64,000 nucleotides of DNA from Penicillus capitatus (GCA_965649825.1 OZ287706.1:876001-940000), one strand, 5' to 3'. Shown: positions 7,750 to 57,471, numbered from the stretch's first letter. Notes: generated from the letters alone by a model not told the origin. Made by a program: numbers and translations.

Positions 7750-8627
7750 TCATGGAGTCAATAGCTGGATGAGAGATGTTCGAGTGTCATCTGAGCAATC
7801 ACGATCAGGTGCAGCGCAAACAAAATCTCGAGGGATTTGTCCATACACCGTCCGGCGTGCGATCGCCGCACCCGCAGCAATTAGATCCTGAGACAAAGAG
7901 TAACTTTTCACGCACAAGAGACAACTCACTTACCTTTGCAATGATTAGACGGCCGTTGTACGATGCAACGTGAAGCGGAGTCCATCCATCATTGCCGGCG
8001 CGGTTGACGTCTGCTCCATGGTGAATGAGTGCTTGAATAACCATGTGAAATCAAGGCAGCGCGGATCAAAAATGGGGTCTACTCGCGCAATCTTTATATG
8101 TCCGAGGTGTGTTGCTAGAAAGAGGGGTGTGTATCCGTAGTTGTCAACAACCTCAACATACGCTCCATGATCGATCAGAGCCTACGAATACCGAGAATGA
8201 TAGAAAAAATGTGGAGAATCGGTGTCTACTGCAGCGACTGTCGTGAGGCCAAATTCTACTGCCAGAAGGAGCGGAGTGTATCCATCTCTATCGACGTCAT
8301 TGACAGTTGCCCCATGATCGATGAGAGCCTGTGGAATGAGTGAACAACAGAATGTGTATGAATCGTTCAGACGGACCAGTGCGATTGCTGCCTGACTGCT
8401 TCCCACTGCCAAAAGAAGTGGAGTGTACCCATTCTTATCAGCAACATTAACATTTGCCTCGTGATCGATCAGTGCCTATAGAACAGATAAACAATAGAAC
8501 GTGCGTCTACGGGAGCATGTAAACGGACCAGTGCGATTGCTGTCTCACTGCTTCTCACCGCCAAAAGGAGCAATGCCAATCCATTTCTATCGACGTCATT
8601 GACATTCGCTCCGTGATTCATGAGAGC
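7750..8627 (-). CDS. 3' part of ankyrin-repeat gene (five ~99-bp repeat exons plus terminal exon)
   Basis: Exons ALMNHGANVNDVDRNG, ALIDHEANVNVADKNGYTPLLLA, ALIDHGATVNDVDRDGYTPLLLA, ALIHHGADVNRAGNDGWTPLHVA; stop TGA at 7750-7752. Confidence 0.85.
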
Positions 8628-11555
8628 CTAAGGGAGCAAGCGGTAAGGTACACGCTTGTTTTTCAGCAGGCACATGACGACACGCAAGAACCGCAGACGA
8701 AACGTTTGGTACTAGTGAAAGCAAACTGGAATGACGAAACTCTTCGAGAGAGACTGAAAGAAAGACAATCACCTTCACCACCACTGCAAGTCACGGAATC
8801 AATTGAACGGGAGTTATTCCCGTTTAAGCAAAGCGGCTGGATTGTCTTCATGGCGGGGAGGAGTTTTGTGTTGGGACCCGTTCGGAGCCGACGGATCATC
8901 CTACCCTTCATATTTGCCGAGTCAACAGAATGGGCATCATTTTTTGACTGCACTCATAACAAGAATATCTTCTGCAAGGTCAAGCTGCACGCACATGGTA
9001 AGATCAGCGTGGTAATCTTCAACCAATCAGATACCCCACAACACGTCACCAGCAAGATGCGACTGTGTTGTGCTAAAGGTAACATTGATTCCATCGCCGA
9101 CGTCGACGGAATGGAATACCCGCTGAGAGTGAAGACCAAGCGTGTTAACAATGTTAGCGTCCTTACACCACTAGGCAAGGATGTTACAGTGGCTCGGCTG
9201 AGAGAAGAATTCCCGCTGGTTTTTTAGGACACCATTCGCCCGACGACCAGTAGGCTGTGGGACCTCAGGGTACGACAGAGATCTTTGTTGGCAAGGCGAG
9301 CCTAAGCCATGCTAGAGGGAGAACTACGTCTCAGATCTCACCAACGAAGAGATCTCAAAAGAGATCGATTCGCCACACAAGGAAGGTGTTATACGACCGT
9401 TGTCTGTGGCTGAGGCAATACACGCTGTCGTTAGCACCTTTAAACTTCATACGCAAACCGAATGGCAAGATCCGGCCCACCATTGACTTCCGCGACATCA
9501 ACACGTACCTGAAGGGAACGCAAGAGGGACCTTTATTCCGGTGTCCCACATCATCCAAAAGGTGGATCCCAAGTGGACCGTATACACCATCGTGGACATT
9601 GTCCACGGCTACGGATCCATCCCAATCGACGACGAGATTTCGCTTTTCTTTGCACTACATTGGAACGGCGTGACGTACGGCTTTCGGAGACTGCCGCAAG
9701 GCGTCAACGTCAGTCCAGAATTTTTTAATAACCGCATAACCCACATCCTACAAGGGTTGGATGTGATCCGATACTTCGACGGCATACTTATCGACGGCGA
9801 AACGGAGGAGGAACTCCTCAACAAGACTAAGCTTTTATTTAAACGTTTCGACGAATATGGCCTGACGATCAACTGTCAAAAGTGTGACTGGTTTGAAACA
9901 TCGGTAAGCTTTCTGGGTACCGAAATCAGTGGTGGGACGTTAAACCTCTACCACAGGGCTCAGGCTATACTCCAGAAGCTGCCAACTATCACATCACGTC
10001 ACGACGTACAAAAAGCCATGGGTCTGTGCCAGCAACTGGCACAGTACTGTTACAAATACGACGCGATCATCACGCAACTCAAGCCATTCCTGAAACGCGA
10101 ACACAATGACTACACCAAAGCTGACGAGATCTACAAAGACGCAGCTCAAACTCTATGCCTCAATACGTACCGACTGACGTTGGAAAGAAGGGGGCCATTC
10201 CATCTGTATACGGATTGGTGTGGTAACCCACTCAACCAGTTCGGATACGTATTGCTTAACTCGACCTTGCAACCTGTTCTCTTTGGCTCATTCACGACGA
10301 AACAGAGGGTCGGAAGTTTTCTGGGGGACTGATGGGGATAGTGCGGGCCTTGAAGGCATGTTACTTTGTGATCAAGCAGACGGAGGTATTCGTTTACTCC
10401 GACAACATGGCTACGGTCAATTGGCTCAAGGAGCCGACATTCCTGCACAAGTTCAAGGACCTCCGGATCCAGAGACAACATTGCTGGCTCCGGCACCACT
10501 TTTCCCACCATCGTCTCCACTTCTGTTTTGTAGAGGGGAAGGACAACGTGATTGCGGACCTTCTCAGCCGATGGAGGGACAACGCACCTGTCGAATTCCA
10601 CACCAAGAAGAAGCAACAGGGATATCAAGTGAACGCCGTATCCTACGCTCCGGAAGAACGGACCGAGCTCATCAAGAAAGCTCATGCAGGCCACTTCGGG
10701 GTAAGGACGACATTCCTGAACCTGCGGTCCGACGGAACCCGCTGGACGAACGACTTCAATGACGTGCGAGATTACGTCAATAACTGCGAGACGTGCCAAA
10801 TGTTTCGCAACCCACGGTCGGAGGTGGACTTGGGTATAATTGACAGTCCATCCCCGAACCACACACTGTGTCTAGACTTCATAGGACCGCTGAACCGTGG
10901 CAGCCACGGGTTTCGGTATATCGCTACCGGGATCGACGCTTTCACTAAGTTCGGCATGGGGCGCCCATGTAAGATGTGCTCGGCAGCACAGGCTATTAAG
11001 CTGGTACTCGAATGGGCACGAAACTTTGGGGCTCCACGAAGGATTCTATGCGACAACGGAAGCGCCTTCATTGCCAGGAGCTTCGAGAGTACCTGCGCAC
11101 AGCACGGAATAGACATTCTACACACCCCAACCTATTCCCACAAAAGCGCGGGCACTGTCGAGGCGTTCAACCGAAACCTCGTAAATCGACTTCGGAGGAT
11201 ATGGGCGGAAAAAGGGGGTGATTGGACGACACATGTGAGCACGAGCGTACATGAGATCAACCGAACGATCCATAGTACGACTCTGTTCTGTCCACAATAC
11301 CTTCTAACTGGCACACAACGAAACGGCACGATAACCAGTCCACAACATCTAGACACCGACCGAGGGCTAGCGTATCAACGAATAATTAAGGCACACCAGC
11401 AAAATAAGACAAGACACCACAAGAAAGTCAAGATCCGTCCCATTGAAGTGGGAGCGGAGGTCTCGTGGTACAACTCGAAGTTGGCCGACCGCCTCGACTC
11501 CAAACTCTACTCCAAATGGGTCTATCCTTGTGTGGTAGTGAAGGAACATAGTGAC

Positions 11556-11802
11556 TGTCGCCGAGCGATGTGACACTGCCTTGTTTTGTGAGGGTCAACC
11601 GTGCGAGGGGGTGCTGCCTGTCTTGTCAACGGCGTCTTGGGACGCCTTTCTCTGGCCCTGAGCACGAGCTGACTCACCTTTCTAGAAGGGTTACGTCAGC
11701 AGGCGACTATATAATGCAGAACCTGAACGTTGTTTCGCCTTGCTCCGAACACTGTAACAAGACTTCCGCTGTTATCGTTTAGTTCGGCGCCTCCGCGCGA
11801 CA
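11556..11802 (+). repeat. 5' LTR of element G
   Basis: Direct repeat of 13227-13473; TG...CA ends; TATA-like TATATAA; TGACTCA motif. Confidence 0.95.
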
Positions 11803-11958
11803 TGGTTTCGGAGCGTTGTTAAACGTTCCTCAGTTTGATCTCCGTCTAAGTGACGTTGCGTGTTTGCTGTGTGCATTACGCGCCTTTCTGAGTGGAAGTC
11901 GAGTCCTGTCTAGACACGTCTAGACGCACCTAGGAAATTCAAGGAAGCAGTAGCAAGG

Positions 11959-13161
11959 ATGAGTCAAGTACGACGAGAGAGAAGAACGGAGCAAGGTCAC
12001 GTAGAAGAGGGGTTTTACAATGCCACAGTTGTCGGGCCGAACCTGCTCAGTTGGCTTCATGAAGACGAGGGTTTATACCCGGAAGGACTTACCTTTCGCA
12101 GGGTACAGACGTGGCGTCGGGGTTACTCCGTCGACGTGCTCAAGGAAAGATACTTGTTGGAGGCGACGGAGCTGTGCGCTTTCTTCCGCTACATCTGTCC
12201 GAGGCTTCAAGAGAGACGGGACCTGCGAGGGGAGAACGAACACCTACGACGGCAGTTGGAGGGTGAGCGGCACAAGGCCTCCGAGGCGGCGAGAAGATTG
12301 CGCGAGGGAAAGGAGAAGATATACCAAAGGGCGACGACCCTTGACGCAGAGAAGGAGCAGCTGCGACAGCAGCTGCAGAGCGAACGACTGACCGCGTCTG
12401 AAGCACGGAAAGCATGTGCCGACGCAGCCCGGGAGAGCGAACGGTGGAAAGGGCTCCACGACGAGCTATACCGGGAGTTTGAGCAGGGACTGCAACAAAA
12501 CGCCTTGGCTGCGCAAGCATGGGAAGAAGTGAATGTGAAGAACGAACGGTTATCGGGGGCGAATGCGAGGCTGCAACAGGATCTTGCCGAGGCGCAGCAA
12601 GGCAGCGTCAAGGCACAGCAAGATGCAAACGAGGCACGCGTGGAAGCCTCCTCTCTCCATGAGAAGCTTAGAGAGACTGACGCCGCCTTCACAGAGGCGA
12701 AGAAAAAGTTTATTTCGGCACCTGATTTGGTGCCATGTCTACAGTCTTTGGCCGCCGAGGTGAAGACTCTGCAGGAAACCGTACGGACGAACGGCGAAAG
12801 GACGGCTGAGTTGATGACGACAAGACCGGCAGAAGGACGGAGAACCGTGAAGACGTTGCATCAGATGAAGCGCGTTTTGCACGACATTGGGCGGTTCCCG
12901 CGCCGACGACGGGCGAGAGCAACCGACGCGGCAGATGATGGCGGAGGTGCCATCAAGCGCGGTCGGATATGTTATGTGTGCCGATGCAAGGGGCATCTGG
13001 CCAAGGACTGTCCGCAAGCGCGGGTTAATGCGGTCGAGTCAGTGGATCCGACGATATCGGATGCGCAGCAGAGAGCGGGGGAACCAAACACAGAAGCATC
13101 ATCATCTTCGGGATGGACCATTTTCTCGGCGCTGCGACGATTCACCTCGGGCATAGACTGA
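11959..13161 (+). CDS. Gag-like protein of element G: long coiled coil plus CCHC zinc knuckle
   Basis: 400-aa uninterrupted ORF; ~200-aa helical E/A/R/Q-rich segment; CYVCRCKGHLAKDC knuckle. Confidence 0.85.
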   Translation: MSQVRRERRTEQGHVEEGFYNATVVGPNLLSWLHEDEGLYPEGLTFRRVQTWRRGYSVDVLKERYLLEATELCAFFRYICPRLQERRDLRGENEHLRRQLEGERHKASEAARRLREGKEKIYQRATTLDAEKEQLRQQLQSERLTASEARKACADAARESERWKGLHDELYREFEQGLQQNALAAQAWEEVNVKNERLSGANARLQQDLAEAQQGSVKAQQDANEARVEASSLHEKLRETDAAFTEAKKKFISAPDLVPCLQSLAAEVKTLQETVRTNGERTAELMTTRPAEGRRTVKTLHQMKRVLHDIGRFPRRRRARATDAADDGGGAIKRGRICYVCRCKGHLAKDCPQARVNAVESVDPTISDAQQRAGEPNTEASSSSGWTIFSALRRFTSGID

Positions 13162-13226
13162 TTTCATTCTGTTGTTTTCGTGGGGGCTTGCTTGCGTTTT
13201 TTTTCGGAGTTTGGCGGGAAGCGTGG

Positions 13227-13473
13227 TGTCGCCGAGCGATGTGACACTGCCTTGTTTTGTGAGGGTCAACCGTGCGAGGGGGTGCTGCCTGTCTTGTCAA
13301 CGGCGTCTTGGGACGCCTTTCTCTGGCCCTGAGCACGAGCTGACTCACCTTTCTAGAAGGGTTACGTCAGCAGGCGACTATATAATGCAGAACCTGAACG
13401 TTGTTTCGCCTTGCTCCGAACACTGTAACAAGACTTCCGCTGTTATCGTTTAGTTCGGCGCCTCCGCGCGACA
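13227..13473 (+). repeat. 3' LTR of element G
   Basis: Matches 11556-11802. Confidence 0.95.
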
Positions 13474-13571
13474 GTGACCACCGTTGGGATATCCGTATGC
13501 CCAACGGTTCGACGCTGCACAATGTCCATCGTGACTTCCTTCGGAGATTAGACAGAAGATAGGTGGGCCCA

Positions 13572-13898
13572 TGTCGTGTTAAGGCGTAGCGCTCGCGTTA
13601 ATGCGCTCATCTACCTACACTTGTGTCGATCTCCAGGTGACAGGTCGTAGGTTCTCCATACCTTCCCATCCACAAATAGACCCGCGGCTTCTATGTCACA
13701 GATTCCAAGCAGATTCCGGAATCTTCGAAGAATATTCGTTTGTGTTACTTAATATAGGCCCACGACCGTAATGCGACGCTACCCTATAAAAGCGTTGTAG
13801 ATGTACAGATCTTGTCTTTCGTTTGTAAGACTTTACGTTTCAAAGGTTTACGTGCGCCCACCGTTCAAATTGTTTCCATCTAAAAAACATACGCGACA
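13572..13898 (+). repeat. 3' LTR of element A
   Basis: Follows integrase stop and GATAGGTGGGCCCA; ends TGTCG/CGACA; homologous to 55713-56095 and 57596-57700. Confidence 0.85.
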
Positions 13899-13915
13899 CT
13901 AGCTAAGCTGTTTAC

Positions 13916-15007
13916 GTGATGTCGTGCGGCATGGCTTTCCTTAACGTTCTCGGAAAGGAAAGAATTGAACGCTTTGCTTTTGAGGTTGTCAAGGGCCATT
14001 TGACGGATGAAGTGAGAATAAGTTATGCTAGGTGGCTTCCTCGTAAGATAACGTATCCTCCCTTTACGGATTGCTCGTCAAGGTTTTTCGTTTCTCAAGT
14101 GATTCATTTGTGTAACCGGTGGTGTGCTCGGAATGTCAATTTTGGCAAACCGGGACCGGCGTCGAAGTTCGTATGCCGTCGGAAGGGTAGGGACGGAGTG
14201 CTAGTACCACGTACTTGGGCAGATTTTGTCGAAGCGCTCTGCGATGTCGCACAGCGAGGAGCTTTCTCTATCAATCCGGCGGCGACGTTTGAGCACCTTG
14301 CTCTAGCTGTGCTCTGCTTAGTTTACTGGTTGAAAAATAAAGGTGTAAACTTTCATACAGCCAGGCTAGTGAAGCAATTTACTAGTATGCTTTGCCAAGC
14401 TATCGAAGTAGCCCATCCGTATCTGCCTACCGAAGCAAACGAGAACGAAGGTGGCGAGGGAAGTGGGGAGCCGCAGCCGGTCGCCGTGCCGCAGCCGGTC
14501 GACGATGAGGATCCGGTCATCACGGACGAAGTTGGAGACACGATTATGGAAACAGAAAAGGCGACGTCTGGGGGCCGCGGTTCAAGACTCCGTAGTCGGG
14601 ACTTGTCTTACGAACAGGAAATGTCAAGGGGAAGAGAGGCAAAGCGCCGCTACAATCTTCGGAACACGCTGGCTCGAGTGGAACGGATGGCGAAGTTGAA
14701 AGAAGCAGAGGACGCAAAGTGGAAGGCGGACAATGAGGAGGAGGAGGTCACGGACGAAGATGGATACGCGAATATGGAAACAGAAGAGGTGACTTCTGGG
14801 AGTCGCGGTCCTAGACGTAGTCGGAGATTGTTTTACGAAGAGGAAACGTCAAGGGAAAGAGAGGCTAAGCGCCGGTACTGTCTTCGGAACACACAGGCTC
14901 GAGTAGAACGGATGGCGGGGTTGAAAGAAGCAGATGACGGAAAGCGGAAGGTCGACGATGGTGTTGGGAGTTCTTCTAGGGCCTCGCGGAAGAAATCAAG
15001 AAAGTAG
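13916..15007 (+). CDS. Orphan intronless protein with an internal duplication (RRYNLR/RRYCLR repeats)
   Basis: 363-aa ORF; two ~65-aa repeats METE...SRxREAKRRY(N/C)LRNTxARVERMAxLKEA(E/D)D; no family recognised. Confidence 0.6.
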   Translation: MMSCGMAFLNVLGKERIERFAFEVVKGHLTDEVRISYARWLPRKITYPPFTDCSSRFFVSQVIHLCNRWCARNVNFGKPGPASKFVCRRKGRDGVLVPRTWADFVEALCDVAQRGAFSINPAATFEHLALAVLCLVYWLKNKGVNFHTARLVKQFTSMLCQAIEVAHPYLPTEANENEGGEGSGEPQPVAVPQPVDDEDPVITDEVGDTIMETEKATSGGRGSRLRSRDLSYEQEMSRGREAKRRYNLRNTLARVERMAKLKEAEDAKWKADNEEEEVTDEDGYANMETEEVTSGSRGPRRSRRLFYEEETSREREAKRRYCLRNTQARVERMAGLKEADDGKRKVDDGVGSSSRASRKKSRK

Positions 15008-15582
15008 GTGACCGTTGAAGCGGTCTGGCGCGCGGATTAGGCTTCGTCGGAGGTTGTATCGGGCTTTTTCGTGTGGAAGGCGGAACTTTGTCGAGATGGG
15101 CAGGTGAGGAGAGAAGCCAATGTCAAGGGTCGGTACAAGATGATACGGAGTTGGCGATCTAATGCGTTGGTTGGCGATGTGTGTTGACATAGCGAACACG
15201 GATGGCGAAATGCGCGATGAGGCCGAAGCACGACGACTAAGGAATGCGAGATGTGGAGAGCGTGGGTTGGTCGTGGCAAAGAGAACGAGGATTGCTGTGG
15301 GGCCACGTTCCTTGCTTGACCTTGGCGTGCTGACCTAGAGTTCTGCGATCGCCATGGCTCGATGCGCTTTTTTTGCTTTTGTGTGTCTTCGTTGGCAAAG
15401 CGGCCTTTTTCCCGCGCCGAGCTTCCGTTTTTTCCTTTTCGGTGTCTGTCGCAGGCTTGTTGTTTTTTCTTTCTAGTTTCCGTTGTTTGTTCTTTATCGG
15501 TTTTGGTCGCCGTTGCAAACACACTTCCGGTTTTTTGTATAGTTTTCTTTTCCTAAAGAGCCGTGGTCCGTGGCTATCTTGT

Positions 15583-15683
15583 GTCGGTTTCGCCAAGAGC
15601 ATGGCTTCGTAGTCGGTCTGAGGGGGACGTCGGTTTCGCCAAGAGCATGGCTTCGTAGTCGGTCTGAGGGGGACGTCGGTTTC
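15583..15683. repeat. 46-bp tandem repeat, ~2.2 copies
   Basis: GTCGGTTTCGCCAAGAGCATGGCTTCGTAGTCGGTCTGAGGGGGAC at 15583 and 15629. Confidence 0.9.
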
Positions 15684-16105
15684 CATACGGGAGAACAATA
15701 GGAGGTATGGTATGTCGCTCCACCGGGTTCGTCAAAGGTGGTCGGTCAAGTGCGGAGGCGTTGGGGGTTGTCTAGGGGACGAGGGAAAGGTAGCGCGGGC
15801 AGACGGTTAGATCGCCAAGGGACAGGTTTGTGCCGTTTGTCCTGGGATGTCGATGAGACTGGAAAGCGCCCATTCGAGACAAAGTTTCGGCTGTTTTGTT
15901 AGTCAGGGGGCAACGGAAGAGACGTGTTCATCAGTCGAATGGTTGCATGGGTTCGCGACAGGCATGCATTGGATAAAAGTATCGTCCGTGAGGTATTCAG
16001 GCAAGGGTTTTGCGTGTCCTTTGATCAAAAGTTCACTGCCGGGCTTGATGCCGTGGTTTTTTTTTCACTGCCAAGACGAGTTCGATCCGCATAAATCGAA
16101 CTGGC

Positions 16106-16265
16106 TGTTTGCCTGCCTGTTGCCGGGGCCGCATGAGCCCCCCTTGTTTGCCTGCCTGTTGCCGGGGCCGCATGAGCCCCCCTTGTTTGCCTGCCTGTTG
16201 CCGGGGCCGCATGAGCCCCCCTTGTTTGCCTGCCTGTTGCCGGGGCCGCATGAGCCCCCCTTGTT
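16106..16265. repeat. 39-bp perfect tandem repeat, 4 copies, each with a GGGGC/GCCCC stem
   Basis: Unit TGTTTGCCTGCCTGTTGCCGGGGCCGCATGAGCCCCCTT. Confidence 0.92.
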
Positions 16266-16877
16266 GTTATAACCAAGTTAGCCATTGTGTAGTGTCTTTT
16301 GAAAACTTATAAGTTTCCTTCGATTGGTGCGCGTGCAAACGGTTCTCGCTTATCTTTTCGTATGCATACTTGGACTATGAGCTATGCTAAGTAGTTACTT
16401 TTGACTGCGGTTAACTCAATGTCCGCATATCCGTCCGGGGTAGACTCGCGCAGTAATGTTTAGGAGAAACGGCAACTGACGTTCAAACTGCTCCCGAAGA
16501 GGCCGTGCGGATACGGACGGCCTTCCGCAGCAAGTGGAGGGTGTTTTTGGAAGGAAATTTCGCTACTCTCGCGGCTTTTCATCAGGACTCGAAGTGTAGT
16601 TTCCGTGTACATCCGACTGCGGAGTGATTGAAACTGTTGACGATGTCGGCGGCGGCGACGACGGCGTCGGATGACTAGTTAGTTACCTGTTCGCTTGCGA
16701 GAGAAAAATGTTCTCTTCGATAGAGTGGTTCGTGACTCTTGGATACAGTCTAAGAGCAAGGGAACAAAACACGAAATGGAAAGGCGTTAGGATGACGTTC
16801 GCGCCAAACCATGATACTTCATCTGTGTCACGCACTCGCGTGGAGTCACATCATTCTGCCTCGATTCTGAGGGATTC

Positions 16878-18300
16878 TGTCGCCGGACGGGTCGGACGAA
16901 AACAGCAAACAGCGGAAGTCCTTTTACAACTGTTGGAGCAAGGCAAAGTAGCGTTCCGACTATCCGTTTTATACCCCAGAAGCGATGTGACCTGCCTAGG
17001 CAGGTGAGTCATCTTTGCGCCAGAACCAAAGAATAGCGCCCCAGATGACTCAACCTGCAACCCCCCAAGACGTGAACCCATCGGAAACGAGGCAGTCACA
17101 TCGACACGCCAAATCTTGGCGACACCACGCTTCCCGCCAACTCCGACGATCACCCTAGTAATATAACCGCAAATGTTCTGCATGAAATGATCCCACTCTT
17201 CGAGAACTTCCATTTTTCCACACCATCCATAATCTCGAACCCCGCGGCTCCGCAGTTAGGTGAGGACCTGTCCACGACGAATGGAGTGCATGGCGCTTTC
17301 TATGAGGTTCATACGCCAGAATCCATTGTCCTGTCTGTAGCGGCGGCTTGCTCGAATATTTTCGAAGGTATGCTTCCCTGTCCCTCTGTCGCCCAGCCGC
17401 TCTCCTCTGTCGAGCGAGGTGCATGGCCTGCTCCCACTCCATGTCCGTCATCAAGCTGCCGTCACGTCGTCTTCCCCAGCACAATTCCATGGGTGTGAAA
17501 CCCGTGGTCTCGCAAATCCCTTGGTTGAAAATCTCCTCCAACGCATGGATAGAGATGTCCTCGGCAGACTTCCAGAGTATCTTGGCCAATCTTGTCTTCA
17601 CGTTTCCCACCTGTCGCTCTGCTGCACCATTGCACCAAGGTGCGTGACTTGGCGACCACCGTTGCTTGATCCCATGCCCCTCACAGAATGCTCGAACCCC
17701 TCCGCCGATGAATTCAGCTCCTCTATCTGCCATGAACATACGAATATGTCCATGTTTCCATGATAAAGCTTGTTCCCATCGCTTCAATCCTCGCAGGACC
17801 GTTCTTTCCGTGGGAGTCTTAGCCACATGTAAGTGCGTGATGCGACTGAAACCGTCGACCAACACCAGAAGGACTCGTTTTCCTCGCCCTCGACTCAAAG
17901 TAATAGGCCCCAGAAAATCTCCGAAGACAACATCGTTTAGGTGAGTTATCTCCATCCCCGTCCATGGTTCCCGGTGCTCCAAGCCACGAAAATGTTGGCA
18001 ATTGGGACACTGCTCCACATACTGGAACACCTCTTTCCTTGCTCCCGGCCAAACCGGGCCATCCCGTTTCAGATGTTGCCACGTCCTTTCTGCGTGCCAG
18101 TGACCCTGATGTGCCTTTTCCAGACGGCTCCTCACCACGTCAACGAGAGGCCGCTGCTGAAGCATAACTGCTCCTACCATCTTCCCCGCCTTCTGCTGGC
18201 TTTTGCTCCGACTCAGGTAATCCGCCACTTGGTTGATTGTGCCAGGTACATACTCAAACTGTGCTTGAGGGAAGTTTCCCCACAGCCATCCCATGAGTCG
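16878..18300 (-). mobile_element. Ty3/gypsy element B, 3' half only (RNase H end, integrase, PPT, 247-bp 3' LTR at 16878-17124)
   Basis: LTR TGTCGCC...GGCGACA on minus strand; tract CGGAGTTGGCGGGAAGCGTGG directly upstream of it. Confidence 0.92.
17155..18294 (-). CDS. Retroviral-type integrase (intact) with RNase H C-terminus, element B
   Basis: NQVADYLSR; HQGHW...CPNC zinc finger; FGDFLGP, ADRGAEF, AAERQV catalytic DDE; SWTGPH GPY/F-like tail. Confidence 0.92.
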   Translation of the reverse strand: MGWLWGNFPQAQFEYVPGTINQVADYLSRSKSQQKAGKMVGAVMLQQRPLVDVVRSRLEKAHQGHWHAERTWQHLKRDGPVWPGARKEVFQYVEQCPNCQHFRGLEHREPWTGMEITHLNDVVFGDFLGPITLSRGRGKRVLLVLVDGFSRITHLHVAKTPTERTVLRGLKRWEQALSWKHGHIRMFMADRGAEFIGGGVRAFCEGHGIKQRWSPSHAPWCNGAAERQVGNVKTRLAKILWKSAEDISIHALEEIFNQGICETTGFTPMELCWGRRRDGSLMTDMEWEQAMHLARQRRAAGRQRDREAYLRKYSSKPPLQTGQWILAYEPHRKRHALHSSWTGPHLTAEPRGSRLWMVWKNGSSRRVGSFHAEHLRLYY

Positions 18301-21300
18301 AGAACATCAACATTCGCCCCATGATCGATGAGAACCTGTGGAGTTACAGAGCTTGTTAACAGTGGAGCATATCTGAAATATACCGTAACGGTCTGCGCGT
18401 CACCGAGTCCCACGGCTAGAAGAAGCGGAGTGCTTCCATTCTTGTTGGCGGCATTGACATCTGCACCACGATCGATGAGAGCCTATGGAACAGTACGAAT
18501 TAATGGACTGTTGCCGAGGATCGGAGTTCACCGTAGCCATCTCTGGGTGGCCGAGTTTCGCGACTTGATGAAGCGGAGTGAATCCTTCTTTATCAATCGC
18601 ATCGACAAACGCTCCATGATTGAGCAAAGCCTGAGATGATAATATAAACGGATCGGATAAGTCAGGACTGATGTGGAGCTTGCCATAGCGATCTCCGTGT
18701 GGTTATAACGGGATGCTGCCAAGAGTGACGTCCATCCTTCCTTATGAACAGCGTCGACATCGACGTTGTGGTCGATGAGAGCCTAGGCAACGATACGATG
18801 TCAGACAGAAACTCGGAATAGATGAAGAATTCGCCATGGCGATTTCTGTTCGGCCATAGCGCGCGGCAGATAGAAGAGGAGCCCATCCGTCATTGTCGAC
18901 ATGGTTAACATTTGCTCCGTGATCCATCAGCGCCTAAAACAGCACGAATTCCAGGGCGGTCTCAAACTCAATGTACAATCGACCTTGGCGAGTTCTACAT
19001 GTCCGGCATAAGTAGCCATCAATAGTGATGTCCGTCCTGTATTCGACGCAACATTGACGTTTGCCCCGAGATCGATGAGTCTCTGTGAAATGATGCCATA
19101 CATCTTATAGAAGAATAGATATGGGATGGTTAGTTCACCATGGCAATCTCTGTGAAACTAAAGAACGTTGCCAGGTAAAGCAGAGTTGATCCATCGCTCA
19201 AGCGAATGTCTAGATCTGCTCCGTGTTCCATGAGAAGCTAAAAAATGATACGGCAGAAAGATAACAGAGAAACGTGAGAGGCAGCTCACCGTAGCGATCT
19301 CTGTGTAGCCATACCGTGCTGCATGATGAAGTACTGTCCATCTATTCTGTTTGACATGATTGACATCTGCTCCATGCGCCAAGAGAGTCTAAGCAGCTTT
19401 GAAGGCTGCTTTCATGAACGAGGACGACCTGTCGTTTACCTGCAAGATATTGATGTACCGACCATAAGCCGCCCTTTGAAGTAGCGTCTCGCCATTGATC
19501 GCATTGGCATCGACGGCTGCTCCTTGAGAAAGAAGGATCTACCGGTTTGCTCGTTAGGAAAGAGATCGGACAGGGCAGGACATACCTCGACGACTTGCAG
19601 ATGACCTTGCCATGCCGCATCGTGCAAAGGCACGTTTCCATAGTTATCGACGGCATTGACATCGACGCCGCAATCCATAAGAACCTTGACAACGACGCTG
19701 ACAAAAACGCCGAAAGGAAGAGAAATGACATGCTCGCACCTTAACTGTCGCACTCTTTCCTTTGAAAGAGGCGAGATGCAACGCCGTTTTCCCTTGAAAA
19801 TTAGCGACAGAGACACCTGCCCCGTTTTCGATCAGTGCCTGTCCGGAATCTCATTCCTTGTATCGATCTCGATCGAAAGGTGCAAGACATACCGTCACGA
19901 CTGTAGTCTCTCCTCTTTTGGCCGCTTTGTGTAATGGTGTTTCCCCGTGTTTGTCTGTTGCGCTCGCATTTGCATCACGATCCAACAGCCACTGTCAAGA
20001 TGTCCATGACAATCATCGCAGGTGATCGATCGGCCAAACCTTAACGGTTTTTAGATCTCCGTTTCGCGCCGCCACCGACAATGCCGTCCAGCCATCGATG
20101 CTATCCGATCGTTCCTTGTTAGCGTTCTCTTCGACGAGCAGCTACATCGAACATGCAGTGGACGGGAACAGACGCTTCGCCGATCGATGTTCACCTTTGT
20201 AATCTCAAAGCGACCACTGTTCGTTGCCATTAATAGCGGCGTCCATCCCGTATTATCCACACCTTCCACATTCGCTCCCTTTTCGATCAGCACCTGAACA
20301 GACACCTTCGGGATTAAGATTGCCGCTCAGTGCACGCGCCTTCGCAATTCTCAGTTGTCCAGTCTTCGCTGCGATCAGAAGAGGCGTCTGTCCCTCATCG
20401 TCGCGCGCATCCAAATCGGCTCCGTTCTCGGCAAGAAGCTAATGGCCAAGTGATGGGAAGGGTGAAAACGATGGAACGGAGGAGGTACTTCCGCGATCTG
20501 CATTTGTCCACTCTCGGCTGCAATGTGCAAAGCAGTCCACTCGCTGCGATCCCTTGCGTTCACATCAGCACCGGCCTCGATCAGCACCTACTTACTGGAC
20601 AGTCATCGACAAAAAGAGAACTGGAAACTCGAATGCTCGCCTTGGCGACGTCTGACTGTTCCGTTCGCGCTGCTTTGTGTAACGGAGTTTCTCGAATCCG
20701 ATCGGTTGTATTGACATTTGCTCCTCGTTCCACGAGTATCTATCGTTGCCTCGATACCGAACGACGAATCGATCTGGAAGCTCACCTCGACAATCTTTCG
20801 ATGGCCGTTCTTCGACGCTAAGCTCAAAGGCGTCTGTCCATCGATATCGACGACATTCACTTCGGCTTTCGAATTCAGAAGAAACTGCAGAGTGCACAGA
20901 AGTATCGATTTAGCATGTCGAAGAGGATTAGCGAAAGTGATTCGGCTGAGGCGTTTGGTCGGTAAGCCATTTGCGCATTGTCGACGAAAGATTCGCTTCT
21001 TCTGTCATCGACGCACGTTTCGATGGCATTCTTCTCTCGCGAGAAACGATGGAGTGTCACACGACTCGCCTTTGTCGCTGATTGGGATCCGTACGCCGCA
21101 GCGACGTGCAGAGGAGTCAGAAGGTCTCTGTTCTGCCGGCCGATCTCTGCACCGTTCTCGACGAGAATCTGCGAACCAATAGGATGTCGCGCAAACAGAC
21201 ACACAAATCTGGTGGCAGCATCACCTTGGCACTGTCTATCGCATCGAACGCTGCCGCCCAGTGAAGCAATGTCGAGCCCTTGACCAAAGGCGTATGCTTG

Positions 21301-38269: not shown

Positions 38270-39469
38270 TTATTCTGCTGTTGGATTCTGATTGCCTTCG
38301 TGGGCTCTCCTGAGATACTTCTCCCACTTCCGGTGCTTAATGTGCGCCAGCGATTCCAACGGACCGATCAATCTGAAGTAGTCCGCCAAGTACAGGAGCT
38401 CCTTGTCTGTTGCGCGGTTTCGATGCGCTCGACGGTAGGGACGAATCGTCAGACCATTCTGGCGGTTCATCACGAAATTGCGTCTGCGTCCAACAGAGCC
38501 GCCGTGAACGCGATCCCATTCCACAGGCGGACAGATGCACGTACTTTAGGTCGTCGAGCATGACGGTGTTGCTCGGATCGTAGTGCTCCGGGAACTTCCT
38601 CCAGATGAACTCGAGCGGCTTGCAGTCGAACACGCCGTACTTCTCCGTCTGGACCGTCACCATCGCCGCGTGATCCAGCATGCAGACCAGGTGATAGTTC
38701 GTGTGGTTCAGGACGCCCAACTCCTACAGCACCGCCGGCCCTCTGGAGTGTCCGTGTACAGGGAGACGGTGTACTCGCATCTTCATCTCCACCCACTTCA
38801 TCGACGTGGCGCTCCAAACCATCAGATCGAAGTGTTCGTAGCAGGCGGCGAGGAAGAAGTGGAGATAGGGTCGCGCGAGCTCCTCAACCCTCTCGGCCGT
38901 GGAGCCCAAATCGAAGATCGTGTAGTCGATGTCGATGACGAGCAGCTTCTTCCCAGGTCTCGGCGGATTGAGAATCCGAACCTGCACCGTATCCAGTCGC
39001 TTCTGGAGCTTCTCTTGCACTACGAGGCGCTCCGCGAGAGATGTCCGGGAGGAAAGGGGAATCGACCTTCGGGTCGCTCGTGGACGCTGATCGAGAGCTC
39101 GTCGTTGGCGTCGATGTCGAAGTCGTCCTTCACCTCGGGTGCCGCTTCGGCGAGCTTCACTGTCTGGTCAATCACAGCATCCGGAGTCCTGTCGCGTCAT
39201 CTCTCTGAAATTTCTATCGTGTGAGAGAGCAGTGGACGGTACCCAAGCATCATGATTTTTTGCCCGGGTTTCAGCAGAAGCTCCGAAACCAGTGTGGCGT
39301 CATTCGTAGGTTTACCCGAAGTGGTCTTGAGTCCAATGTACTTCTGCCTGCCGACTTCGACGTTCGCTCTCTCTTTCATGTGCGTCTTGACCGCGGTCAT
39401 CGTCTCGTTGGGCTCCACGCTGACATGGTACTCGTTGCCATTCCAACGCACCGTTAACACGACAGCCAT
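38270..39469 (-). CDS. UBLCP1: Ubiquitin-like domain CTD phosphatase 1
   Basis: N-terminal UBL (VRWNGNEY...RQKYIGLK); HAD motif LLVIDIDYTIFD; VMLDDL; NGLTIRPY. Confidence 0.92.
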
Positions 39470-55712: not shown

Positions 55713-56430
55713 TGTCGCGTCGGGTGTTTGATGGAACTGATTTGAATCGTAGGAGACCGTAAACCTTGAAACGCAAAGTCTTACACAACGAAAGACAAGA
55801 ACTGTACATCTACAATTGTCAGCGGAAGGCTTCACGTATTACAGAGCAAAGGTATACAATGGTCTACGTTCACATATTTGTATGCTATAGGTGACATGAC
55901 AGATGAGTCACTGGCCTATCAGGATCACGGGAAAGGATCCATAGGTTAACGTAAACCTCATGTAAGCGCCTCTTCGGAGACAGAACCCTTAGATAGCGAC
56001 GCAGTCACGATAGGACAGCCTCGGTCTTTCTGACAACAATGCTTACATAGGGAGTAGATGAGCTCATTATTAGGAGCTTACGGCTTAACACAACATGGGC
56101 CCACCTATCCTTTGTTTAATCTATGAAGGAAGTCACAATGGACATTGCGTACCGTCGAACCATTGGGCAGACGGATGTCCCAACGGTGGTCACTATGTTT
56201 CTTGACTACCATATACGGATAAACCCATTTGGAGTATAGTCTAGAGTCGAGACGGTCGGCCAGTTTCGAGTTGTACCACGAGACCTCTGTTCCCAGATTA
56301 ATGGGGCGGATCCTGACTTTCTTGTGGTGTTTCGCTTTTTTTTACTGATGTGCCTTAACTATTCTTTAGTATGCTGGCTTTCGGTCGGTATCTGGTTGTG
56401 TACTAATTATCGCGTCGTTCACCGTTTGCG
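55713..56430 (-). mobile_element. Relic of an A-family element: integrase tail, PPT and 3' LTR (55713-56095)
   Basis: Reverse complement aligns to 11330-11555 joined to 13479-13571, with a single GTGAC. Confidence 0.88.
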
Positions 56431-57205
56431 CGACAGATCCAAAAAACCATTAAACATCTAATTTTGCCGCCGACAAAAGGAGGTCTTCGAGAACTTCAAG
56501 CGGAATTTTACATAATCTGAGCATCTCAAGTGACATTGTCACAATCTTCACACCGAGGCTAATTTATATTCTGGACCTAACGAGTTATCAAACTTAGCTG
56601 CAAGATATAAGGTAACATAACCACTTGTAGCAACGATCGGGAGGAGTTGACCCCTATCTTGACAACCCTAGCGTTCTAGCCATCGGTCTCGACGGGTGAT
56701 GGCTCTGGTTATAACTTCCTACTAACAATATGATAGTAGTTACTGAACGTAAGCTAAAGCTCGCAACTATTGAAAACAAAGGTTAGCGAACACTGAACCA
56801 TCAAGGGTATTTACAGCAAACATTCTCCCCGTGAATATCTCTAGTTCTTTGGTGTTCAAATCCTGAGTGTTTTCGCCAGCGTTGTCGTTCGCATATCGAC
56901 TCCAAGTGTCTAAGTGTTTTACACGATTCCCGACGTAAGCCTTTAACTCAATGGACTCTGTACCATCCTTCACTTCATTGTATTCCTTCTCATCCAAAAA
57001 CCCGAAGAAAGAAAACTCATCTAGGACAATGAATGTGCGAGAAAAAGAGCATCGTTCTTGTCACCAGAAACAGCTTCCTTGCAGCTGCTTCCCCTTAGCT
57101 TCCATCCGCGCCACCGGGAAGGAGGTTTTTATTTAAAACCGACTATCTGTGCATAATTCACCGTTTAATGCACGTAGCCACTCGTTCACTATTTCTTGCT
57201 CTCGT

Positions 57206-57471
57206 TGTCGCCAAAATTTCTCTGGCGATGGGACTGCCTTGTTTGTAAGGGGTGCCAGTGCTTCTTGAGACGCTGTTTGTCACGTCAAATGGGTTCACTG
57301 AACTCTGAGGGTTCATTTTCTATGGTTTTGGTGAATGGCTGAGTCATCTGCCTTGGAAGTCACGTCATCACGCAGTATTTAATGAACAATCTGGATCTCG
57401 TTTGACCTTGCTCTGTAAACATCTAGAAGTCTTCCGCTGTTGTATCTTCTTCATTCGGCCGACCGGCGACA
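57206..57471 (+). mobile_element. Solo LTR of the G/B family
   Basis: TGTCGCC...GGCGACA, 266 bp; TSD CTCGT at 57201-57205 and 57472-57476; shares CTGCCTTGTTT, CCTTGCTC and CTTCCGCTGTT blocks with G and B. Confidence 0.9.

Follow-up and report, generated by a model that had tools for sequence, protein, structure and literature searches.

Some long terminal repeat (LTR) retrotransposons occur as pairs, such as RIRE2 and Dasheng in rice or BARE1 and BARE2 in barley, in which the partner shares the LTR termini, the primer-binding site (PBS) and the polypurine tract (PPT) and has a different internal region. The non-autonomous partner in such pairs is no less numerous or diverse than its helper; Dasheng is devoid of coding capacity, and BARE2, closely related to BARE1, has a defective gag and relies on the BARE1 Gag. 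The LARD, TRIM and SMART elements are noncoding, non-autonomous LTR elements of small size that are reliant on cis signals (PMC13570524, PMC6934838). For their part, the plant TR-GAG elements (terminal-repeat retrotransposons with a GAG domain) are LTR-bounded, shorter than 4 kb and endowed with one open reading frame (ORF) in the gag position and no pol enzymes; they are described as semi-autonomous and presumed to borrow Pol from autonomous LTR elements (PMC13570524). Here we analyze two elements of the stretch OZ287706.1:876001-940000, referred to below as the window (64,000 nucleotides [nt], with positions counted from its first letter): G, a complete small LTR element at 11556-13473 (+), and B, of which a 3' fragment lies further along on the minus strand. 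G is a young copy of an old and large non-autonomous family resembling TR-GAG, which probably uses the Pol of the B clade in trans.

TR-GAG is the closest named category for G, which is 1918 bp long and LTR-bounded and has just one ORF, at the gag position. However, the ORF of TR-GAG elements is a recognizable Ty1/copia or Ty3/gypsy GAG, whereas the G ORF encodes an orphan protein with a coiled coil and a CCHC knuckle and falls outside that definition. In contrast to the partners in RIRE2/Dasheng and BARE1/BARE2, G keeps a selected ORF of its own, which is not homologous to that of the putative helper. Non-autonomy, small size and cis dependence are shared with the LARD, TRIM and SMART elements, from which G differs by its conserved, selected ORF and its conserved leader. 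G-type elements could be called semi-autonomous.

Copies with LTRs and a lone gag-position ORF (gag-only copies) were seen in context six times, in the window and at loci L002, L003, L011, L012 and L013, and five of them were delimited in detail. Full-length elements of the B clade numbered four (L007, L008, L009 and L010). L008 belongs to the same ENA metagenome assembly as the window (ERZ25074695), in which an exact match to the G protein was found on the 954-kb contig ctg340479, and the further B-clade lineages L007, L009 and L010 come from assembly ERZ26696514. G-type and B-clade elements were found together in both assemblies sampled. The coverage of G-type contigs in ERZ25074695 differed about 8-fold, with 344x for L002 versus 32 to 43x for the window, L003 to L006, L008 and L011, a gap which may reflect two related genomes or compartments of unequal copy number.

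G has a 247-bp 5' LTR (11556-11802), running from TGTCGCC to GCGACA and with a TATATAA box at about 11708, that is identical at all 247 positions to the 3' LTR (13227-13473). The element is flanked by a 5-bp target site duplication (TSD), GTGAC, at 11551-11555 and 13474-13478, and it interrupts the integrase of another Ty3/gypsy-like element, A. This integrase, with rve and H2C2 domains, occupies 10332-11555 (+) and resumes from 13479 to about 13565, the A reverse transcriptase (RT) starting at 9541. When the flanks of G were joined, the open integrase frame of A was restored, and the same reading was found in an uninterrupted paralogue at 56183-56419 (-). Thus, given the identical LTRs, the TSD and the empty site restored by joining the flanks, G is a clean and very recent insertion. 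Element A is unrelated to B, the two integrases being only 26% identical.

Between the G LTRs lies an internal region of 1424 bp with one ORF, of 400 amino acids (aa), at 11959-13161 (+). No protease, RT, RNase H or integrase was detected between the LTRs with Pfam, the only match being a weak zf-CCHC. The PBS, TGGTTTCGGAGCG (11803-11815), is identical in L002, L003, L012 and L013 and in L007 to L010, and that of L011 agrees with it in the first 12 nt; no tRNA gene matching it was found in a scan of the window and ten loci. It is followed by a leader of 143 nt (11816-11958) with a palindromic block, TCTAGAC..GTCTAGAC, which is a candidate packaging or dimerization region. In a comparison of the leaders of G, L002, L003, L011 and L008, conservation was observed among the gag-only elements and not with B. 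At the other end, the polypurine tract region TCGGAGTTTGGCGGGAAGCGTGG (13204-13226) finishes with the purine-rich stretch GGCGGGAAGCGTGG, which ends at 13226 and abuts the 3' LTR. G therefore shows the features of an LTR retrotransposon: TG...CA direct repeats, a TSD of fixed length, a PBS beside the 5' LTR and a PPT beside the 3' LTR.

An upstream ORF of six codons (MVSERC and a stop; 11802-11822, +) has its ATG astride the LTR end and the PBS. The ATG of B-clade ORF1 also straddles the LTR end and the PBS, with a product beginning MVSER (L007:7740-8066, L009:3828-4193 and L010:3563-3988), and ORF1 of these three elements opens with ATG|G TTT CGG AGC, as in the upstream ORF of G, which looks like a vestige of the ORF1 start of its autonomous relatives. 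An unrelated gag-pol at L006:17939 likewise begins with MVSER.

The original prediction held that the G and B LTRs are both 247 bp long with common termini and blocks, and that the same tract precedes the 3' LTR in both elements, and this was confirmed. The two LTRs aligned with a score of 62, compared to 1.5 ± 2.3 in 1000 dinucleotide shuffles (z of about 26, and of about 12 with the termini removed), and blastn gave 70% identity over 140 nt (E=2e-6). A 21-mer made up of GGCGGGAAGCGTGG plus TGTCGCC occurs exactly twice in the window, at 13213-13233 (+) and 17138-17118 (-), against a chance expectation of 0. The stretch that precedes it, TCGGAGTT(T), is also common to both elements, with one extra T in G. 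Every B-clade element carries the entire 22-nt PPT, TCGGAGTT(T)GGCGGGAAGCGTGG, followed by TGTCG, as do G, L002, L003 and L011; no other site in the window has it. The tract of the B fragment (TCGGAGTTGGCGGGAAGCGTGG, 17125-17146, -) is identical in L005, L007, L008, L009 and L010, and L002 and L008 showed 98% identity over 57 nt across the PPT and the LTR start.

Thus, G and the B clade have in common the PBS, the PPT, up to 33 nt of the 5' end of U3, the CGACA end and 5-bp TSDs. The similarity of the gag-only U3 to the U3 of autonomous LTRs reached 70 to 75% over some 110 to 120 nt, and the G-type U3 is homologous to that of the autonomous B-clade LTRs. The R-U5 portion differs: gag-only LTRs stop about 90 nt past the TATA box, with the block GCCTTGCTCC..GACTTCCGCTGTT, and autonomous LTRs continue for about 300 nt further. 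Beyond the PPT and the LTR ends, no internal nucleotide similarity between G and B was detected. LTR termini, PBS and PPT shared with an autonomous family of the same genome place the pair with helper/parasite associations of the RIRE2/Dasheng type, a relation which fits because the sites that G shares with the B clade are exactly those needed in cis by RT and integrase. The PBS was considered as evidence of partnership and dropped, as the same PBS is used by unrelated LTR families (L006:17940, the minus strand of L004 and window position 39291).

L004, L005 and L006 were searched for a gag resembling that of G ahead of a B-like pol, but this was uninformative, the B copies there being degenerate or 5'-truncated; the degenerate B-like copies at L005:11413-11990 and L006:11590-11800 bear 3' LTRs of the long type. 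An exhaustive search of representatives yielded a Pol of 921 aa (P0053), and the follow-up yielded P0203, of 920 aa, which is 95% identical to the integrase in the window. P0203 sits in L008 and has RVT_1, RT_RNaseH, Integrase_H2C2 and rve domains, the protease being located instead in ORF1. The L008 element is complete, with LTRs of 386 bp that are 100% identical, a GATAT TSD and an AG spacer before the PBS; its ORF1 lies at 7974-9791 and its ORF2, in the -1 frame, at 10001-12763. L007, L009 and L010 have the same layout, with identical LTR pairs and TSDs. The slippery heptamer A_AAA_AAC overlaps the ORF1 stop and is followed by a GC-rich hairpin of 8 to 9 bp and then by a G-run (L008:9783-9820, L007:9753-9790 and L010:5819-5856), the hairpin being kept via compensatory changes. 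Because at least six B Pol copies share 99.3 to 99.8% identity, B is currently active.

In all four full-length elements ORF1 encodes about 560 to 610 aa, with 42 to 46% identity across L007, L009 and L010. Its product (L008:7974-9791, L007:8064-9761 and L010:3986-5827) contains an N-terminal hydrophobic segment, a Cys/Trp-rich block (CQDL..WDPYGTGGHW) and another segment resembling a transmembrane (TM) helix. Coiled coils, a zinc knuckle and a protease are common to the four; in L008 the knuckle reads CERCKKWHPGLEC and the protease motif is FLIDTGSE (Pfam Asp_protease_2, weak). No gag or capsid domain of Pfam was detected in B-clade ORF1, and the AlphaFold2 model was poor, with a predicted local distance difference test (pLDDT) score of 53, which is insufficient for a structure search. 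In L007, L009 and L010 an open, aa-conserved frame (..IPYAPLYPTF..FRQGEHAEL..VVHNVGLYD..) leads from the interior of the long U5 into ORF1. The order protease-RT-RNase H-integrase (PR-RT-RH-IN), with the rve integrase after RT, is that of Ty3/gypsy elements (Metaviridae), which B also resembles in its H2C2 and rve domains, TG..CA LTRs, 5-bp TSD, tRNA-type PBS, and A_AAA_AAC plus hairpin. Unlike those elements, it has a TM-like ORF1 with no detectable capsid domain and a long U5 with a conserved open frame into ORF1. Judged by its layout, then, B is an ordinary Ty3/gypsy-type element with an unusual ORF1.

These elements bear directly on the proposal that B-type elements lack gag and that G and B form a split gag/pol system, for which the recovery of full-length B copies and a comparison of any gag with the G ORF had been suggested as a check. 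The proposal fails, ORF1, with its knuckle and protease, being joined to pol by frameshifting in L008, L007, L009 and L010. A gag-position ORF is thus present in full-length B, and it is unrelated to the G ORF: hhalign of the G family against B ORF1 gave a probability of 14%, confined to the coiled coil, and BLASTP revealed no homology apart from the knuckle motif. Against two further gag-PR proteins found locally the hhalign probability was below 1%, and nothing past the knuckle was matched.

The search with the G ORF, which was limited to proteins of 220 to 700 aa, gave 32 clusters with 38 to 77% aa identity, 30 of which were aligned; all come from two ENA assemblies, one contig being also at NCBI. 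A scan of JGI metagenome contigs with the G-family profile revealed no relatives. Nearly all the proteins have 300 to 400 aa and end in a common tail, ...FTSGID; conservation is good in the C-terminal half, which holds the knuckle CYxCRCKGHLAKDCP, and the N-terminal half is variable. Pol was absent from the interior of all gag-only copies (0/6), and the five delimited ones are LTR-ORF-LTR elements of about 1.2 to 2 kb with a PBS and 5-bp TSDs (AGATG in L002, AGTGC in L003, GGAAG in L012 and GTGAC in the window). Pairwise ratios of nonsynonymous to synonymous substitution rates (dN/dS) among four G-family ORFs ranged from 0.31 to 0.46, and by this measure the ORF is under purifying selection. 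Three near-identical G proteins were found on three contigs, which together with the identical LTRs indicates recent activity of the family. The ORFs of G and L011 form a mosaic, dS being 0.75 over the 5' half but 0.013 over the 3' half; this contrast indicates recombination within the G family. The original prediction that G is old and independently maintained, and no fresh deletion of B, was in agreement with these data: at least 30 clusters at 38 to 77% identity, intact ORFs, the dN/dS values, a leader of its own and no internal similarity to B.

The G protein has a single CCHC knuckle (CYVCRCKGHLAKDC), a match under the Pfam cutoff, with a basic tract before it. In an AlphaFold2 model built from the alignment of 30 sequences, a small beta domain (residues 14 to 67) is followed by a single helix of about 180 residues, forming a coiled coil, then by two shorter helices and a disordered basic region holding the knuckle. 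No capsid-like fold was present in this model, and a Foldseek comparison with the PDB gave nothing at E<=0.001. Because there is neither Gag homology nor a predicted fold match, the label "gag" for this ORF refers only to its position and knuckle.

Another member of the family, at L012:4701-6093, belongs to the P0023 subfamily (16 members) and has 123-bp LTRs, the GGAAG TSD and a differing PPT. Like G in the A integrase, it has inserted into the pol of a different LTR element, where it separates RNase H from integrase; the cause may be a target preference, or no more than a context rich in transposable elements. The window also contains a solo LTR of the short gag-only type at 57205-57471 (+), with 267 bp (TGTCGCC...GGCGACA), a CTCGT TSD and about 77% identity to the L002 LTR, which is the remnant of another G-type insertion.

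The B fragment in the window retains, as predicted, an intact integrase. Its uninterrupted ORF of 379 aa (17155-18294, -) covers the end of RNase H and then Integrase_H2C2 and rve, and is 95% identical in aa to P0203. The segment 17091-18324 (-) matches L008 11592-12827 with 96.8% nt identity and, because the match to this full-length element ends at 18324, B is 5'-truncated, which is in accordance with the missing 5' half noted originally. Identity to L008 also ends on the other side, 33 to 34 nt into the LTR. The LTR of the fragment (16878-17124, -; 247 bp, TGTCGCC...GCGACA) is of the short gag-only type, being 77% identical to the gag-only L002 LTR over its full length and 78% identical to that of L003 over 159 nt, and it has, like gag-only LTRs, a short R-U5 and nearly the same end, CGTCCGACCCG.CCGGCGACA. 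The canonical B LTR, that of L008, has 386 bp, and the LTRs of L005, L007, L009 and L010 are long, with an extended U5, and measure 541 to 623 bp where complete (623 bp in L007). Thus, the similarity first noticed between the G and B LTRs is real, but the LTR that was compared is not a typical B LTR, and the equal length of 247 bp is not a property of the B family; a gag-only type of LTR stands on a B integrase.

By parsimony, the chances are about even, or a little better, that the window copy is a recombinant between B and a gag-only element. It would consist of B pol up to the PPT and then of an LTR of the gag-only type, the crossover falling in the shared PPT and 33-nt stretch. Such a structure is what template switching between copackaged RNAs, a process established in retroviruses, would be expected to produce, and its operation in this copy would be by extension. 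The other explanation of this LTR, that it is the ancestral LTR of the B lineage from which the short gag-only LTRs arose, so that no recombination between parasite and helper took place, appears unlikely to us. It would accord with the first 34 nt, the GGTCACATCGCTT motif and the TATA region shared by the L008 LTR and the window B LTR, and with the rearranged aspect of the former, which has an internal U3 deletion. However, the other B-clade LTRs (L005, L007, L009 and L010) are long and have a conserved extension of U5, the short R-U5 block (GCCTTGCTCC..GACTTCCGCTGTT..CGTCCGACCCG.CCGGCGACA) was found elsewhere only on gag-only elements, and the diversity of the latter is far older than the split of about 3% between window B and L008.

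A comparable lack of probability attaches to the view that the G-type elements depend on some other autonomous family, outside those sampled, the likeness to B being due to common ancestry of the cis signals within the Ty3/gypsy-like elements of this genome and to an accidental capture of a short LTR by the window B copy. The unrelated L004 family, in which the PBS is the same, the LTR begins with TGTCG and the PPT core (GCAGGGAAGCGAT) is similar, would speak for it, as would the differing PPT of the L012 subfamily and the length bounds of the search for G-like domains. Against this, exact matches to the full 22-nt PPT are confined to the B clade and to G-type elements, the 98% identity between L002 and L008 over 57 nt takes in both the PPT and the LTR start, U3 homology ties the gag-only LTRs to those of the B clade, and no pol adjoins any of the six G-type copies. 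Far less probable is a bipartite system, with B-type elements devoid of gag, G supplying it and neither moving alone. The co-occurrence of both types in the two assemblies is compatible with it, and so is a B ORF1 that combines TM-like segments with a pLDDT of 53 and no recognizable Gag or capsid Pfam domain, but a conserved ORF1 stands in each of the full-length B-clade elements, where A_AAA_AAC and a hairpin couple it to pol in the ordinary gag-PR/pol layout, and the identity of 42 to 46% extends across three further lineages; moreover, the G protein too has no predicted capsid fold. Of the two relations originally put forward, that of helper and parasite is thus supported by the shared cis sites, and the bipartite one is refuted by ORF1 in full B copies. 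Least credible of all, and refuted by these data, is a recent origin of G by internal deletion of B, since common LTR ends, PBS and PPT are accompanied by an interior with no nt similarity to B outside the PPT and LTR ends, by an ORF unrelated to B ORF1, and by a family that is deep and diverse.

We favor as probable, then, the use of B-clade Pol in trans by the old G family. RT, RNase H and integrase of the B clade would act in trans on G RNA; the G protein would bind this RNA, possibly via the conserved leader, and bring it into particles containing Pol; and G-type and B RNAs would meet in the same particles and recombine. Several points weigh against this. The shared cis sites are the sole grounds for proposing mobilization in trans, and one of them, the PBS, carries no specificity. 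The gag-only subfamily of L012 and L013 has another PPT and may depend on a different helper, or on none that was sampled. Because the G protein is unrelated to B ORF1, neither the entry of B Gag-Pol into a particle of G protein nor the retention by G of a protein of its own is explained. A search bounded at 220 to 700 aa could have overlooked a G-like domain that is part of a long gag-pol fusion. As for the exchange of LTRs, the nearest sampled gag-only LTR is just 77% identical to that of window B, so that no donor for the recombination is identified, and the direction of exchange is uncertain because the L008 LTR is rearranged too.

A further reading, which we offer tentatively and regard as possible though doubtful, concerns the nature of the G protein. 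In LINE-1 ORF1p a nucleic-acid-binding module comes after a long coiled coil, and the protein has a presumed role in RNA binding or as a chaperone, with a cis preference, and some ORF1 proteins of non-LTR elements carry CCHC knuckles. The G protein may be an independently evolved, ORF1p-like RNA-binding protein with a coiled coil and a zinc knuckle, and no degenerate Gag. With it, the 1.9-kb element would form its own ribonucleoprotein and take over the Pol of a Ty3/gypsy-like helper, the ORF1 of which bears no relation to the G protein and is apparently membrane anchored; LTRs would be swapped repeatedly between parasite and helper by template switching over the 55-nt stretch of PPT and U3 start. 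The resemblance to ORF1p is an analogy of architecture, with no match in sequence or fold, and G, for its part, is an LTR element.

The genes near G look eukaryotic (trypsin, ankyrin, Kelch, E2F/DP and a C-type lectin with VWA), and the host of the G and B elements is an apparently intron-poor, non-plant eukaryote. Ankyrin-like repeat units of 108 nt at 8224-8630 and 18378-18936 bracket the whole block of transposable elements, and elements A (+) and B (-) are each 5'-truncated at the start of these repeats, an arrangement suggestive of a composite, rearranged insertion into an ankyrin-repeat gene. Between the 3' end of A and the B LTR there is an ORF of 363 aa (13916-15007) with an internal repeat of 2 x 75 aa and no Pfam match, as well as short tandem-repeat arrays at 15590-15680 and 16100-16260.

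The G/B pair reveals no new kind of retroelement organization. TR-GAG-type elements with a selected ORF have been described mostly in plants, where the ORF is a recognizable Gag; here, instead, a diversified and active family has a protein unlike the ORF1 of its putative helper and yet, by its substitution pattern, under purifying selection, and it bears traces of recombination within the family and probably also with the helper. If the tentative ORF1p-like reading is true, the G family would be an LTR hyperparasite that has long persisted outside plants, armed with a protein of its own. G and B make up a compact natural system in which to address what a structural or RNA-binding protein encoded by the parasite contributes to the hijacking of Pol, and which cis set (the PBS, the CGACA end and some 55 nt spanning the PPT and the beginning of U3) is enough for mobilization in trans.

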